The notes: a model not told the origin generated them from the sequence alone. Counted from the stretch's first letter, positions 24,438-39,400 are shown. The stretch is 64,000 nucleotides of DNA from Macrostomum lignano (GCA_002269645.1 NIVC01002915.1:1-64000), one strand, 5' to 3'. Translations and numbers: made by a program.

Positions 24438-27400
24438 CCGACAGCGCAGTCTCCACTCCAGTCGTGTTGTCAGCTGTGTACAACACCGACTTGGGTACAA
24501 CTGCTCAACGGGACACCTACAGTGGTAACGGAGTCTATGAGCACCTGGCCCTGCTCAGTATGGACTCTGAGTACACCAGCGGTGTGCCAGCGGTGCTTGA
24601 CTGTCAGCAGCCCGACGGTCGTTGCAGTCGAAGCATCTGCGCAGATCCCAGCATGAAGGAGTCTGGCACCGCTAATGAGCTGGTTTTCAACTATGTCAAC
24701 ATTAGCGTCGGTAAGCATGCGACTGTGTAAGACTACAAGAGCTCGTACTACTGCTTGCCGTATCAGTAGTATTGAGGGATAAATTTTTTGTACTAGCTTT
24801 ACCTAACCATACCTGCTGAACAGTGGCTCTGTCTGTTACAGCAGCCATGCACACCTGCAATACAACAGTTTCACCTGCAATACAGTAGTTTCACCTGTAA
24901 TACAGTAGTTTTAACTGTAATACAGTAGTTTCAACTGTAATACAGCAACTTCACCTGTAATATAGTAGTTTCACCTGTAATAAAGCAGTTTCACCTGTAA
25001 TACAGTAGTTTCACCTGTTATTCAGTAGTTTTGCCTGCAATACAGCAGTTTCATCTGTAATACAGTAGTTTCACCTGTAATACAGTAGTTTCACATGTAA
25101 TATAGCAGTTTCACCTGTAATACAGCAGTTTCACCTGTAATACAGTAGTTTCACCTGTAATACAGTAGTTTCACCTGTAATACAGTAGTTTCACCTGTAA
25201 TACAGTAGTTTCACCTGTAATACAGTAGTTTCACCTGTAATATAGCAGTTTCACCTGTAATACAGCAGTTTCACCTGTAATACAGTAGTTTCACCTGTAA
25301 TACAGTAGTTTCACCTGTAATACAGCAGTTTCACCTGTAATACAGTAGTTTCACCTGTAATATAGCAGTTTCACCTGTAATACAGCAGTTTCACCTGTAA
25401 TACAGCAGTTTCACCTGTAATACAGCAGTTTCACCTGTAATACAGCAGTTTCACCTGTAATACAGTAGTTTCACCTGTAATATAGCAGTTTCACCTGTAA
25501 TACAGCAGTTTCACCTGTAATACAGTAGTTTCACCTGTAATACAGTAGTTTCACCTGTAATACAGTAGTTTCACCTGTAATACAGTAGTTTCACTTGTAA
25601 TACAGTAGTTTCACCTGTAATACAGTAGTTTCACCTGTAATATAGCAGTTTCACCTGTAATACAGCAGTTTCACCTGTAATACAGTAGTTTCACCTGTAA
25701 TACAGTAGTTTCACCTGTAATACAGTAGTTTCACTTGTAATACAGTAGTTTCACCTGTAATACAGTAGTTTCACCTGTAATACAGTAGTTTCACCTGTAA
25801 TACAGTAGTTTCAACTGTAATACAGCAGTTTCACCAGTAATACAGCAACTTCACCTGTTGTACAGTAGATTCATTGGTAATACAGAAAGCTTAATTTTTT
25901 AACGGTGATTTTACTTGTTATGCAGTAGCCATTAATTACATTTGACAGTGTTTGCTTTGGATTCTTTATCCAGGTTGCCACAATGCCTTGCTGCTGGAGG
26001 ACCAGGTTCTGATCACATCATCATCGTTTAACTCTCGTCGCTCGCATAATAACAGTCATATTGGCAGCATCATGTCTTCAGATGGTACGCTATTGATACA
26101 CGCATTTACCACACATTCAACGTTCTGCACTCTGTGACTATCTTTAAACTGCATGAACTTTTCTCATGATGCGCGCAAAATACCTCCCTTGCAGATTACG
26201 TGCAGTGTGTTTTGACTCGAAACGATTTCAATTTTTATCGGTACCCATGGTCCGTGACAAAACAGGGGGAGGTGTGCAAACCCTGGGCCACCGTCGATGC
26301 AACTTACAAAGAGTACAATTCGTCGTGTATTTCTTGTGAGCACCGTTAACATCATTTTAGGCAGCGCGTTGTCTTACAAAAGCAGTTTTACGGCTATAAT
26401 GTTCTTAAAAAATTCCAGACGCCAGCCTCTACGAGCCACGCTGCTACAACCAAGCTAATACTCTTACAGATTGTGTTGACTACACAAACAATTACTGTGG
26501 TAAGAAATTACAAAGGAGCCTTCCCCTGTTGCTCCTTCCTGTGTCCTTGTAGCCGATTGTCACTCCTTCCTGTGTCCTGTAGCCCATTGTTACTCCTTCC
26601 TGTGTCCTGTAGCCGATTTTTACTCCTGCCTGTGTCCTGTAGCCGATTGTTACTCCTTCCTGTGTCCTGTAGCCCATTGTTACTCCTTCCTGTGTCCTGT
26701 AGCCATTGTTACTCCTTCCTGTGTCCTGTAGCCGATTGTTACTCCTTCCTGTGTCCTGTAGCCGATTGTTACTCCTTCCTGTGTCTTTTTAGCCGATTGT
26801 TACTCCTTCCTGTGTCCTGTAGCCCATTGTTACTCCTTCCTGTGTCATGTAGCCCATTGTTACTCCTTCCTGTGTCATGTAGCCGATTGTTACTCCTTCC
26901 TGTGTCCTGTAGCCCATTGTTACTCCTTCCTGTGTCCTGTAGCCGATTGTTACTCTTTCCTGTGTCCTGTAGCCGATTGTTACTCCTTCCTGTGTCTTGT
27001 AGCCCATTGTCACTCCTTCCTGTGTCCTGTAGCCGATTGTTACTCCTTCCTGTGTCCTGTAGCCGATTGTTACTCCTTCCTGTGTCCTGTAGCCCATTGT
27101 TACTCCTTCCTGTGTCCTGTAGCCCATTGTTACTCCTTCCTGTGTCCTGTAGCCGATTGTTACTCCTTCCTGTGCCATGTAGCCCATTGTTACTCCTTCC
27201 TGTGTCTTGTAGCCCATTGTTACTCCTTCCTGTGTCCTGTAGCCGATTGTCACTCCTTCCTGTGTCTTGTAGCCGATTGTTACTCCTTCCTGTGTCCTGT
27301 AGCCGATTGTCACTCCTTCCTGTGTCTTGTAGCCGATTGTTACTCCTTCCTGTGTCCTGTAGCCGATTGTCACTCCTTCCTGTGTCCTTTAGCCGATTGT

Positions 27401-36400: not shown

Positions 36401-39400
36401 CTGCTTTGAGTGGAACTACCCGGAACCGATGCCCAGCTCAACAGACTTCTACGTCACCTGCCACGTGGAGACAGTTGCTCGATATTATGTCATCTTGAGG
36501 AGCGCAGCCATTGGAACATTGAAGATTAGCTATGTCACTCTGGTTGGAGATGAAGGTGAGATGGCCTGTCATACGGACTAACAGATGGAGATAGACAGAT
36601 AGACAGATAGATAGGCAGACAGACAGACAGACAGACAGACAGACAGACAGACAGACAGACAGACAGACAGACAGACAGACTGACAGACAGACAGACAGAC
36701 AGACAGACAGACAGACAGACAGACAGACAGACAGACAGACAGACAGACAGACAGACAGACAGACAGACAGACAGACAGACAGACAGACAGACAGACAGAC
36801 AGACAGACAGACAGACAGACAGACAGACAGACAGACAGACAGACAGACAGACAGACAGACAGACAGACAGACAGACAGACAGACAGACAGACAGACAGAC
36901 AGACAGACAGACAACTCTTGTCATAGTTTAAAATGGCTTAATTCAGTGTGCATTATTAAGTTGGCAAAAGCAGTCATTGACAACCAACGCTCGCTCCCCT
37001 CAGTTCCGGAAATCGGTTCCAAGCTGCAAAAGTTCATTCCGTCCAGATTTCCTCGACAATTGATAGCCGAAGCCGTGCAGAACGGCAACCGGATGGAATT
37101 TCACCTGCGCATCAGAACCGCTTCCGTGATGCTGTACTTCTCTGAGTTCTACGAGCAGGCGGACATAATGACTGGAGTGAGTGCTACTCAGAGTTAGAAA
37201 GTATATATACAAAAAGTTTCAAGTTACAATTTTGATTCAGGATGACTATTGCGCCATTTATTGCGTTCAGGCGTAATTGTACGACGCACTTACTTGACTT
37301 AGCTGCAGGGGGTTCCATTCAATGCACAGATATCTAGACTTGAATCATTAATCAATTTGCCACGGGCCATTGGCTTGCAGTCAGCCTATCTTTTGAAACC
37401 AGATTGAAACGTACGGCGGGCCGCCCGCTGAGAATGTCTGTAACTTTGGAGTACCTTGGCCTGCTTAAAGTACGTTTGTGCATTTCGATTAGGCAAGAAA
37501 ATCGTGTCTTTTAAGTGATTGCATCAATGTGAAGGTCTGGAAAGTCTGCCAGGCTGAAGAAGAACGATTGAAGAGATGGATCGTAGTCAATTCAAACTCG
37601 AGCGAGTGCTTTTTTCATCGAGAGCACTGAAAAAGCAAAAAAACTATCGTTTCTAAAAGAGTCGTTGAACATATTGACAATTCTGAATGCTGACATTTTA
37701 CATGCATGGCTAAAGAAGAAGGGGTTTTCTCACTTGCGAATCAGTCATTCTGCCTTTATAGATCATATTTACTACTTGGCTTCCCCGATCCCCTTCCACC
37801 AGACCAGGTACGAGGTGGCCATCACCTGCAATGGCAGCCACGCGTTCCTGGCCGCAAATCCGGCCGTTCGTCGTGGCGACCTCTTCGGCGCCAATCTGCA
37901 GACGCTCGCCGCCCTGGCGGTGTTGGAGTCGGCCCGGCTGCCAGTCCAGTGCGACGACTTCCTGCGCACCTCGACAGCCTGGAGCGGCGAGCCGCCAGTT
38001 CAGGTGGCCATCGAGATCGAAGGACAAACGCTGGCCAGACTGCAAGCACCACTGAACAGCAGTTTGAATGTCAGCAATGTTGCTTACGTTGGGGTGGACT
38101 CTGAGCACCAGGCTGTACTGTTGATTAATAAAACCGGTAAGAATCTCGATTAACTCCTTACTTTCTCATATAGATAATTTCTGAGAGCTTTAAGCAAGAC
38201 TGCAGGGTTTTGAGCGCTGAGCAGTCCCGTTTCGCTTGTGTGTTCAAAACAAGCGCTCGATACGGACGCGCACAGGTAAACTCAGACATATGTGTATCAA
38301 CAGCGGCCCTGACTTTCTCGTTGTCAGACCATGTGCTACATACTACTAATGTACATATCATGACAATCCTCAATGATTTTACCTTTCAGGCCAAAGAAGC
38401 CTAGGATTTTGGAGCCCAGTAACCGCCAATGGGCCTGACAGTGCCAACGGGTTCCGTGAATACATTCAGGTGCGAATGAATTTTGCTCAGCGAATCACGA
38501 GTGCTTTACCATGGCATTGCAGACAGTCTGAAGTCTAGAAATTTTTCCTTTCGTGGTTGCCATTTACAGGCCAGCTTCCCGAAGTTTGTCACGGCCTTCA
38601 TCCTGTCGATGCAGAGCGGCACAGGTAGATTTGATGCTGGCAGCAGCTGGGCATCGAATGTGAAGAAGGTACAGCTGGCCTACAGTAACAACGGACTGCA
38701 CTTTGAGCACTACATTCACGTGAGCAGTAGTATAGCTTTATTTTGGGAAATTTATACAATCTACGAGGTAGAATGACGGGTTCAAGAAGCTGTGCGTTTG
38801 CAGTTAGTTGCCTAGAAAAAGACGGTGCTAGAAGCCACAGCCAGGCAATGTACAGTGTGGAATGAGGAGTGAAGATGAAGAAGGCGAATTTCACTGAGTT
38901 CGCTTTTAGCTGTCCTGTTCGCACTTAAAATTCCGTTAAAACCGACAGAAAATCCGCGGTCCATTGGCTGGCGATTTTGTCACCAGCTACCGCCTGACCC
39001 CGGAGGTGACGGCCAAGGCCTATCGCGTTTATATCGTGGATTTTACTAACAGGATCGAGTTCCGCTGGATGCTGTACGGCTGCTGGAACTGTGGGTTTTT
39101 TATTTATTTTATCGTTCCAATTTTCAGCAGAAATGCAGATCTATAATCGAATTTTATCTTTGTTTGTTGTCATGACAAGTTAGCCTAACCGAAGCCCCAT
39201 ACAGAGGGGCCAGCTGACAAACCCAACGTTTCACAAAATTCCAAGAAAGCATTTTATTTCACAAACCCATGGTCTGAAACCCAGGCAAAGTAGCTCTCGG
39301 AACCTTCAGTTCAGTTCAGTTCAGTTCATTTCAGTTCAGTTCAGTTCAGTTCAGTTCAGTTCAGTTCAGTTCAGTTCAGTTCAGTTCAGTTCAGTTCAGT

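Follow-up and report, generated by a model that had tools for sequence, protein, structure and literature searches.

What does a short exon carrying the opening signature of a discoidin domain do some 400 residues upstream of the body of that fold? This arrangement occurs twice in a mosaic lectin-like gene of Macrostomum lignano, within a 64,000-nt stretch of sequence (GCA_002269645.1, NIVC01002915.1:1-64000; hereafter the window) that is eukaryotic, has GT-AG introns and contains many minisatellites as well as one long interspersed nuclear element. In either copy (modules 1 and 2), a single exon, E1 (E1′ in module 2), precedes a kringle, two further domains that we call X and Y, and then the remainder of a discoidin (F5/8C) domain: ~40 residues of E1 with a cysteine, PLL and an ITASS-type strand, ~390-420 residues of insert, and ~120-135 residues up to the cysteine of a terminal LYGC motif. 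On balance, we favour a nested-domain reading, wherein the kringle-X-Y exon block was inserted in a phase-1 intron inside an F5/8C domain. Exon order, intron phases, co-translation and conservation are matters of observation here; that E1 rejoins the downstream sandwich we infer.

Spliced models were built by reading the sequence around each candidate exon, with canonical GT-AG sites used exclusively. The ten exons of module 1 join into a single open frame of 579 amino acids and the nine of module 2 into one of 563, with the same domain order in both (Table 1). The original prediction had taken E1 and its twin for the N-terminus of an F5/8C domain, and both exons are present where it placed them, each with an AG acceptor, a GT donor and phase 1 at either end. 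The domain also resumes as it proposed, at 38390 (running to 39090) and at ~54370-55032, and the insert is entered through a phase-1 intron with all intervening exons in frame, in module 1 as in module 2. The modules share 26% identity with each other; a third copy was not found by tblastn within the window. The whole unit has thus been duplicated, with two copies in this gene and related units in paralogs.

Existing gene models carry the same layout. P0003 (UniRef A0A1I8F8D3, 1118 amino acids, M. lignano) covers window positions 41553-56693 at ~97-100% identity in most exons, in the linear order C-type-lectin-like domain, E1′, kringle, X, Y and F5/8C. It sets E1′ between the C-type-lectin-like exon and kringle exon a, spans E1′ through LYGC, and agrees with our spliced model at six of the eight internal module-2 junctions. 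Paralog models P0007, P0155, P0045, P0118 and P0124 likewise link E1 to the kringle and the kringle to X. Around module 1, the phase-1 donor G at 24711 and the GT at 25974 together make up a Gly codon, which brings the preceding exon of the gene in frame with E1. At the other end, a profile search retrieved two M. lignano UniRef entries, one of them 100% identical to the last module-1 exon and the exon after it, and the donor at 39090 with that next exon is supported by UniRef A0A1I8G667 and A0A1I8G2E3 (P0002, P0004).

The two boundaries of the insert differ between the modules. In module 1, phase-1 introns lie at both edges, and the donor of E1 (G/) and the acceptor of the first continuation exon, E_e (/GC), are mutually compatible, such that an insert-removed model is also in frame. 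In module 2 the 3′ bounding intron is absent: the second exon of Y (Y-b) and the F5/8C continuation form one exon, inside which reading of the sequence revealed no phase-1 acceptor, and the insert is therefore co-translated with the rest. Judging from the single open frame of each module and from P0003, E1, insert and downstream F5/8C are predicted to be on one polypeptide. The insert comprises 418 amino acids in module 1 and ~387-403 in module 2, which is longer than the ~370 originally estimated.

Several features point to E1 as the N-terminal piece of the F5/8C domain. Opening right after a phase-1 intron, it reads x-C-x2-[PA]-L-L, followed after 6-14 residues by [ILVF]-[TSD]-[AS]-S-[SIY], and some copies continue with Y-R-P and [VM]-R-[LV]-[RK]. 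The order of these landmarks is that of C..PLG, ITASS, W-x-P and ARL in factor V C2 and neuropilin-2 b1. Among 82,000 residues of related proteins and 128,000 residues of six-frame window translation, the motif C..[PA]L.{6,14}[ILVF][TSD][AS]S[SIY] picks out E1 exons only (window 25976 and 51912; P0003, P0007, P0045 and P0124) and has no match in shuffles, albeit as a motif written post hoc on copies that are homologous and hence not independent. When the E1 family profile was aligned by hhalign to four ordinary F5/8C domains, its top placement was collinear with their N-terminal columns 8-46; a score this high is nothing unusual (92 of 300 shuffles attain it), while score and placement together are reached by 9 of 300. 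Across five paralogs, mean identity amounts to 36.7% for E1, 34.9% for kringle exon a and 31.7% for X. E1 is conserved like the folded domains and would therefore be no free linker, which argues for a structured element. Its cysteine (position 2) is found in all five copies that cover the site, and the LYGC cysteine in all three that reach it.

Two other homes for E1 were considered. The idea that E1 supplies a strand that X or the kringle lacks was rejected, both of these being complete alone. That E1 might form the tail of the upstream C-type-lectin-like domain was judged unlikely: that domain ends in the usual YFTC, and a phase-1 intron lies between.

The downstream part resembles neuropilin-2 b1 (E=4e-11 to 8e-11, two-sequence profiles), with further matches to the factor V and VIII C domains, CASPR2, lactadherin, DDR1 and discoidin-2. 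This similarity is confined to part of the fold. Profiles of the rest alone, or enriched with paralogs, align from the WLQVDL-type strand onward only, HMMER alignments begin at residue ~44-52 of ordinary F5/8C domains, and Foldseek aligns 107-111 columns, as compared to C2 and b1 targets of 156-160 residues. With similarity starting at the WLQVDL-type strand, the first ~45-50 residues of the fold thus have no recognisable contiguous source. Pfam PF00754 scores 13.9-19.8 bits against a gathering cut-off of 28.2, over profile positions 34-123 and with or without E1 (13.3 bits in gene model P0033). In an AlphaFold2 run on the gene-model module, the continuation from RVYVQVSF onward has a predicted local distance difference test (pLDDT) of 45-76.

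Compared with ordinary F5/8C domains, namely the C2 domains of factors V and VIII, neuropilin b1 and a third, contiguous domain of the same gene that we term D3, the C-terminal ~105-110 residues of the modules are alike in sequence and fold. Ordinary domains share the terminal LYGC with the modules, and their first exon opens with x-C-x2-P-L after a phase-1 intron, as E1 does. Whereas they are contiguous, the recognisable N-terminal signature of the modules stands ~400 residues upstream, and the downstream part stays below the PF00754 cut-off. D3 aligns full-length to factor V C2 (whole-chain E=6e-10; independent E-value 9e-4 for the full-length C2 stretch alone). Its entire N-terminal third lies within one exon, so that not all F5/8C domains of this gene share an intron at the E1 boundary. 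D3 itself has neither the first nor the last cysteine and ends in LEILGYPE.

Besides the post hoc origin of the E1 motif and the common descent of its copies, a series of profile and modelling results weigh against the nested reading. When the insert was removed in silico, the hidden Markov model (HMM) search yielded no full-length F5_F8_type_C hit of the kind the original prediction had expected, but a match of 17.9 bits to profile positions 55-123, short of the same cut-off of 28.2. In an hmmsearch of PDB, adding E1 moved the neuropilin-2 domain score from 28.4 bits (rest) to 28.5 with an alignment no longer than before, while the 3′ end of Y-b joined to the rest scored 29.6 and extended to chain residue 11 of neuropilin-2 b1. 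Against four ordinary domains, E1 plus rest, Y-tail plus rest, and rest alone reached hhalign scores of 72.8, 73.1 and 72.4 (local) and of 62.9, 65.9 and 67.1 (global). Paralog-enriched HMMs reach neither E1 nor the Y-b tail, the E1 family profile retrieved no F5/8C chain from PDB at E<=10, and Pfam was blank on short E1 constructs, as it was on Y-tail constructs. AlphaFold2 rendered E1 as coil (pLDDT ~31; module-2 gene model, 12-row alignment with E1 rows unpaired with the rest); given such unpaired rows, this result neither supports nor excludes packing. In that gene-model module, X alone was confident and the F5/8C rest moderate, with E1, kringle, Y and the junction low, and a run on Y plus the F5/8C rest was unusable (mean pLDDT 41). 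The assignment of E1 as an F5/8C N-terminus is thus partly supported, by signature, position and recurrence in both modules, but not by any HMM or profile score; likewise, the insertion of whole domains into F5/8C finds support in layout, phases and conserved terminal cysteines, but not in the HMM tests, nor did the domain labels attached to it survive in full (see below).

The 3′ end of exon Y-b also counts among the points against, as it offers a contiguous N-terminus of equal score. On this alternative, the F5/8C domain would be uninterrupted, its N-terminal strands coming from the Y-b 3′ end and the start of the next segment, and E1 would be the first exon left over from a second F5/8C domain that is otherwise lost, or else a conserved peptide packing against another domain. 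HMMER pairs the Y-b tail with LGMESGRIANEQISASS of neuropilin-2 b1, such that the alignment spans almost the complete domain (chain residues 11-158), and the construct scores slightly above E1 plus rest both in bits and in global hhalign. The junction follows the pattern hGYS[SG], a variable 2-15 residues, QVxFxQ (LLINKT in module 1) and T[LM]G[AF][FW]SP, with the strand-like QVxFxQ/LLINKT segment kept in four copies and, in module 2, without an intron between Y and the segment. The distance from hGYSS to the aromatic residue (24-35 amino acids) compares with 26-31 from ITASS to NAW in ordinary domains, which again speaks against a split. However, the gain of 1.2 bits over the rest is not significant, and the extension into the tail is lost with paralog-enriched profiles; the best hhalign placement of the Y-tail on ordinary domains stems from an insertion specific to gene model P0072 and lacks significance, 36 of 200 shuffles reaching it. 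At the sites of the ordinary Thr/Ser and Ala, hG[YV][SD]S has Gly and Tyr/Val, whereas E1 has the ordinary [TS]-[AS]-S-S. The only cysteine near this N-terminus is missing from module 1, leaving none to pair with LYGC, and the same module has just two residues between hGVDS and the next strand, hence no room for C..PLG. Moreover, AlphaFold does not model the Y-b tail as strands either, and the conservation of E1 (37-41 amino acids, one cysteine) at the level of folded domains would stay unexplained. Taken together, we consider a contiguous domain unlikely, yet a serious candidate.

Alternatively, the six insert exons of module 1 could be a cassette, with a main transcript spliced from 26084 to 38390 that encodes an ordinary F5/8C domain and an insert-containing form that is minor or alternative. 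E1 and E_e, both phase 1, indeed join in frame to a domain of ordinary length (161 amino acids), and such splicing would be compatible with the nested reading. Yet models P0003, P0007, P0118 and P0124 link E1 to the kringle exon, and the insert exons retain open frames and conserved residues at the 26% identity that separates the modules. In module 2, skipping is impossible because Y-b and the continuation form one exon that has no phase-1 acceptor. We therefore hold the cassette to be improbable. More improbable still is that E1 represents a chance open reading frame (ORF) or a pseudo-exon called by gene predictors rather than expressed coding sequence. It is just 37-41 codons long, has no HMM support, and the UniRef models that include it are possibly ab initio predictions; against this, homologous E1 exons are shared by the two modules and at least four paralogs, invariably upstream of the kringle, with canonical splice sites, conserved phase and a mean identity that equals that of the flanking domains.

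Which domains make up the insert? The kringle, listed as a "half-kringle" in the original prediction, turned out to be whole: a small second exon in each module completes it, giving two exons and six cysteines in modules 1 and 2 as well as in P0007. Searched against PDB, a six-sequence profile of this family retrieved kringle chains exclusively, the N-terminal half matching HGF K1 (E=1e-6) and the C-terminal half (profile positions 42-70) the urokinase kringle (E=7e-4). Pfam Kringle gave no match on the spliced modules, and the spacing from Cys2 to Cys3 is below the usual. In paralog models P0118 and P0124, only the first kringle half, with three cysteines, is present and domain X follows directly; either the predictor skipped the second kringle exon or some paralogs have a true half-kringle.

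X is, according to its predicted structure, a complete galactose-binding-like jelly roll. In the whole gene-model run, module-2 X reached a pLDDT of 80-96, and Foldseek related it to CBM32 4a42 (template modelling score 0.66-0.67), F5/8C-type chitobiase domains and the fucolectin 3cqo; tandem-discoidin proteins with two domains align to X together with the downstream F5/8C. The label "FTP-like" given to it earlier agrees at the level of fold class only: the modelled jelly roll is common to X, F-type lectin/FTP and CBM32 domains, but X differs from F-type lectin/FTP in having no Pfam match at E<=1, none to FTP included, no PDB sequence match at E<=10 (seven-sequence profile), and no fucose-binding motif H-x24-R-x-D-x4-[RK] of F-type lectins. 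As for Y, the proposed "FAMeT-like" identity found no backing in Pfam, where modules 1 and 2 and P0072 were without a match, including to PF12248 (Methyltransf_FA), nor in PDB, where a four-sequence profile returned nothing meaningful. AlphaFold pLDDT for Y was 21-38 in the whole-module run and at most ~58 when Y was run with the rest. Despite repeated MAFFT alignment of the two, Y and X are unrelated by hhalign.

How might such a gene have arisen, and how would its product fold? In our proposal, a six-exon block encoding a compact kringle, the jelly roll X and the orphan Y entered a phase-1 intron of an ancestral F5/8C domain in a mosaic lectin-like gene. E1 would fold back on the downstream sandwich and supply its first strands and the disulfide partner, and the split domain would be closed, as is usual for this fold, by a bond joining its outermost cysteines. 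Alignment to factor V C2 would put the insertion site near the ARLN / QG..NAW loop, which we take to be "spike 2" of the C2 structure, and the three inserted domains would project from a loop on the ligand-binding side. That an F5/8C domain carries ~400 residues of three whole domains in such a loop, acquired through an intronic exon block and retained both across an old tandem duplication and in several paralogs, we rate as an even call.

The discoidin fold is not known to host a multi-domain "Russian doll", and a literature search turned up neither an account of this gene nor any report of a discoidin domain that is interrupted. Nested domains are familiar from integrins, both in the beta subunit, with its PSI/hybrid/beta-I "Russian doll", and in the alpha subunit, where an I domain sits in the beta-propeller. 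There, as proposed here, a parent extracellular domain encoded in two pieces is interrupted by one or more whole domains emerging from a loop. In the present case, however, the parent would be a discoidin sandwich, the insert consists of three unrelated domains in series, encoded by six exons with phase-1 bounds, and reunion of the parent is proposed from sequence rather than seen in a structure. As in exon-shuffled mosaic proteins with phase 1-1 modules, all modules here have phase-1 introns at their limits, and the inserted block is of the symmetrical 1-1 kind, as intronic insertion predicts. The entry of symmetrical exon sets into introns is an established but minor route, with likely intronic insertions estimated to make up less than 10% of domain gains (Buljan et al. 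2010, PMC2926785). Whereas such gains normally fall between domains, the target intron here would lie inside one.

The family seems, by sequence search, confined to M. lignano records, since all members but one are M. lignano gene-model fragments. The insert-removed profile matched fragments of the same locus only; module 1 gave no match among the 8000 word-sharing candidates at which its search stopped, a list that was possibly swamped, and D3 gave none in its homology search. The sole member from outside M. lignano records is P0053 (102 amino acids), a domain-X homologue labelled "hypothetical protein" on a 1091-bp JGI/IMG metagenome contig. The UniRef names of P0001-P0004, P0033, P0045, P0072 and P0124 (ADP,ATP carrier protein, DDE Tnp4, TGc, ZP, CUB) mismatch the actual sequences and look like annotation transferred from elsewhere. 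Upstream of the C-type-lectin-like domain, another divergent F5/8C-like domain is encoded at 41553-42480 (the N-terminus of P0003), with a counterpart at residues 27-127 of P0007 that scores 19 bits in Pfam. The window therefore holds at least four discoidin-type units of this gene.

Table 1. Exons of the two modules and associated features in the window (positions counted from its first nucleotide; phases are those of the 5′ and 3′ bounding introns).
Feature	Position	Strand	Phase	Remarks
Upstream exon, same gene	24438-24711	+	3′ phase 1	Ends NYVNISV, donor G/gt; in frame with E1
Module 1, E1	25974-26084	+	1-1	37 amino acids; candidate N-terminal F5/8C piece
Module 1, kringle exon a	26195-26335	+	1-1	N-terminal half, Cys 1-3
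Module 1, kringle exon b	26419-26499	+	1-1	C-terminal half, Cys 4-6
30-bp minisatellite, non-coding	26527-35801			~309 copies over 9.3 kb with 93% matches; takes up the intron separating kringle exon b from X exon a
Module 1, X exon a	35894-36121	+	1-1	
Module 1, X exon b	36316-36555	+	1-1	
Module 1, Y exon a	36947-37176	+	1-0	Donor picked by analogy with module 2 and P0072
Module 1, Y exon b	37803-38136	+	0-1	3′ end is the rival source of F5/8C N-terminal strands
Module 1, F5/8C continuation exon 2 (E_e)	38390-38469	+	1-0	
Module 1, F5/8C exon 3	38570-38719	+	0-0	Matches neuropilin-2 b1 and factor V C2
Module 1, F5/8C exon 4	38949-39090	+	0-1	RWMLYGCWN
Module 2, E1′	51910-52032	+	1-1	41 amino acids; P0003 joins it to the C-type-lectin-like exon upstream and kringle exon a downstream
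Module 2, kringle exon a	52336-52473	+		Spliced model, P0003, kringle profile
Module 2, kringle exon b	52559-52633	+		Spliced model, kringle profile; skipped by P0003
Module 2, X exon a	52873-53100	+		Spliced model, P0003
Module 2, X exon b	53204-53440	+		Spliced model, P0003, AlphaFold, Foldseek
Module 2, Y exon a	53704-53870	+	1-0	
Module 2, Y exon b fused without intron to first F5/8C continuation segment	54001-54420	+		One open frame; P0001 and P0003 read through
Module 2, F5/8C exon 3	54652-54810	+		Spliced model, P0003
Module 2, F5/8C exon 4	54891-55032	+		Spliced model, P0003
D3, ordinary contiguous F5/8C, same gene	60881-62203	+		Exons 60881-61066, 61455-61648 and 62059-62203

Module 1 Y would gain 14 amino acids if another phase-1 pair of donor and acceptor (37180/37762) were used. 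The several-hundred-codon ORFs found on both strands of the 30-bp minisatellite are repeat artefacts. Other introns of the gene hold long and pure microsatellites, (AGAC)81 at 36589-36913 between X exon b and Y exon a, and (TTCAG)40 at 39305-39503 after the last module-1 F5/8C exon. An apparently intact non-long-terminal-repeat retrotransposon lies on the minus strand at 45375-49567, within the intron that separates the C-type-lectin-like exon (44553-44681) from E1′, and P0003 splices across it. Its ORF2 (1080 amino acids) encodes an apurinic/apyrimidinic endonuclease, a reverse transcriptase and RNase H; the upstream ORF (317 amino acids) had no Pfam match. A dispersed repeat of ~240 bp, possibly a short interspersed nuclear element, is present in two copies of ~90% identity at 40588-40860 and 61089-61330, both intronic and in the same orientation. 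Upstream of the gene, 22-23-bp tandem arrays of up to 311 copies and with a strong skew in strand composition occupy 2241-9397, 4-536 and 10597-11824, the latter two having the common unit AGAAGCGTCATGT. Two arrays resembling interstitial telomere repeats, one of (TTAGGG)n in 12.7 copies at 1360-1433 and one of degenerate TTAGGGTTAGGCTAGGG at 12258-12318, are also present. ARAGORN called no tRNA in the window.

If the two pieces of the F5/8C domain do reunite, this gene would provide a clear example from nature of exons shuffled into a within-domain intron, and a discoidin domain would bear three binding modules directly at its ligand-binding end. The arrangement thus bears on the tolerance of discoidin spike loops for large insertions, which would be useful for protein engineering. 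Should the pieces stay apart, the gene would instead warn against taking a short exon for proof of a split domain merely because its N-terminal motif is convincing. It also bears on annotation pipelines, which may miss or mislabel discontinuous domains; here, Pfam displays a sub-threshold fragment only. For Macrostomum itself, these modules bear on how lineage-specific families of lectin-like proteins have expanded.

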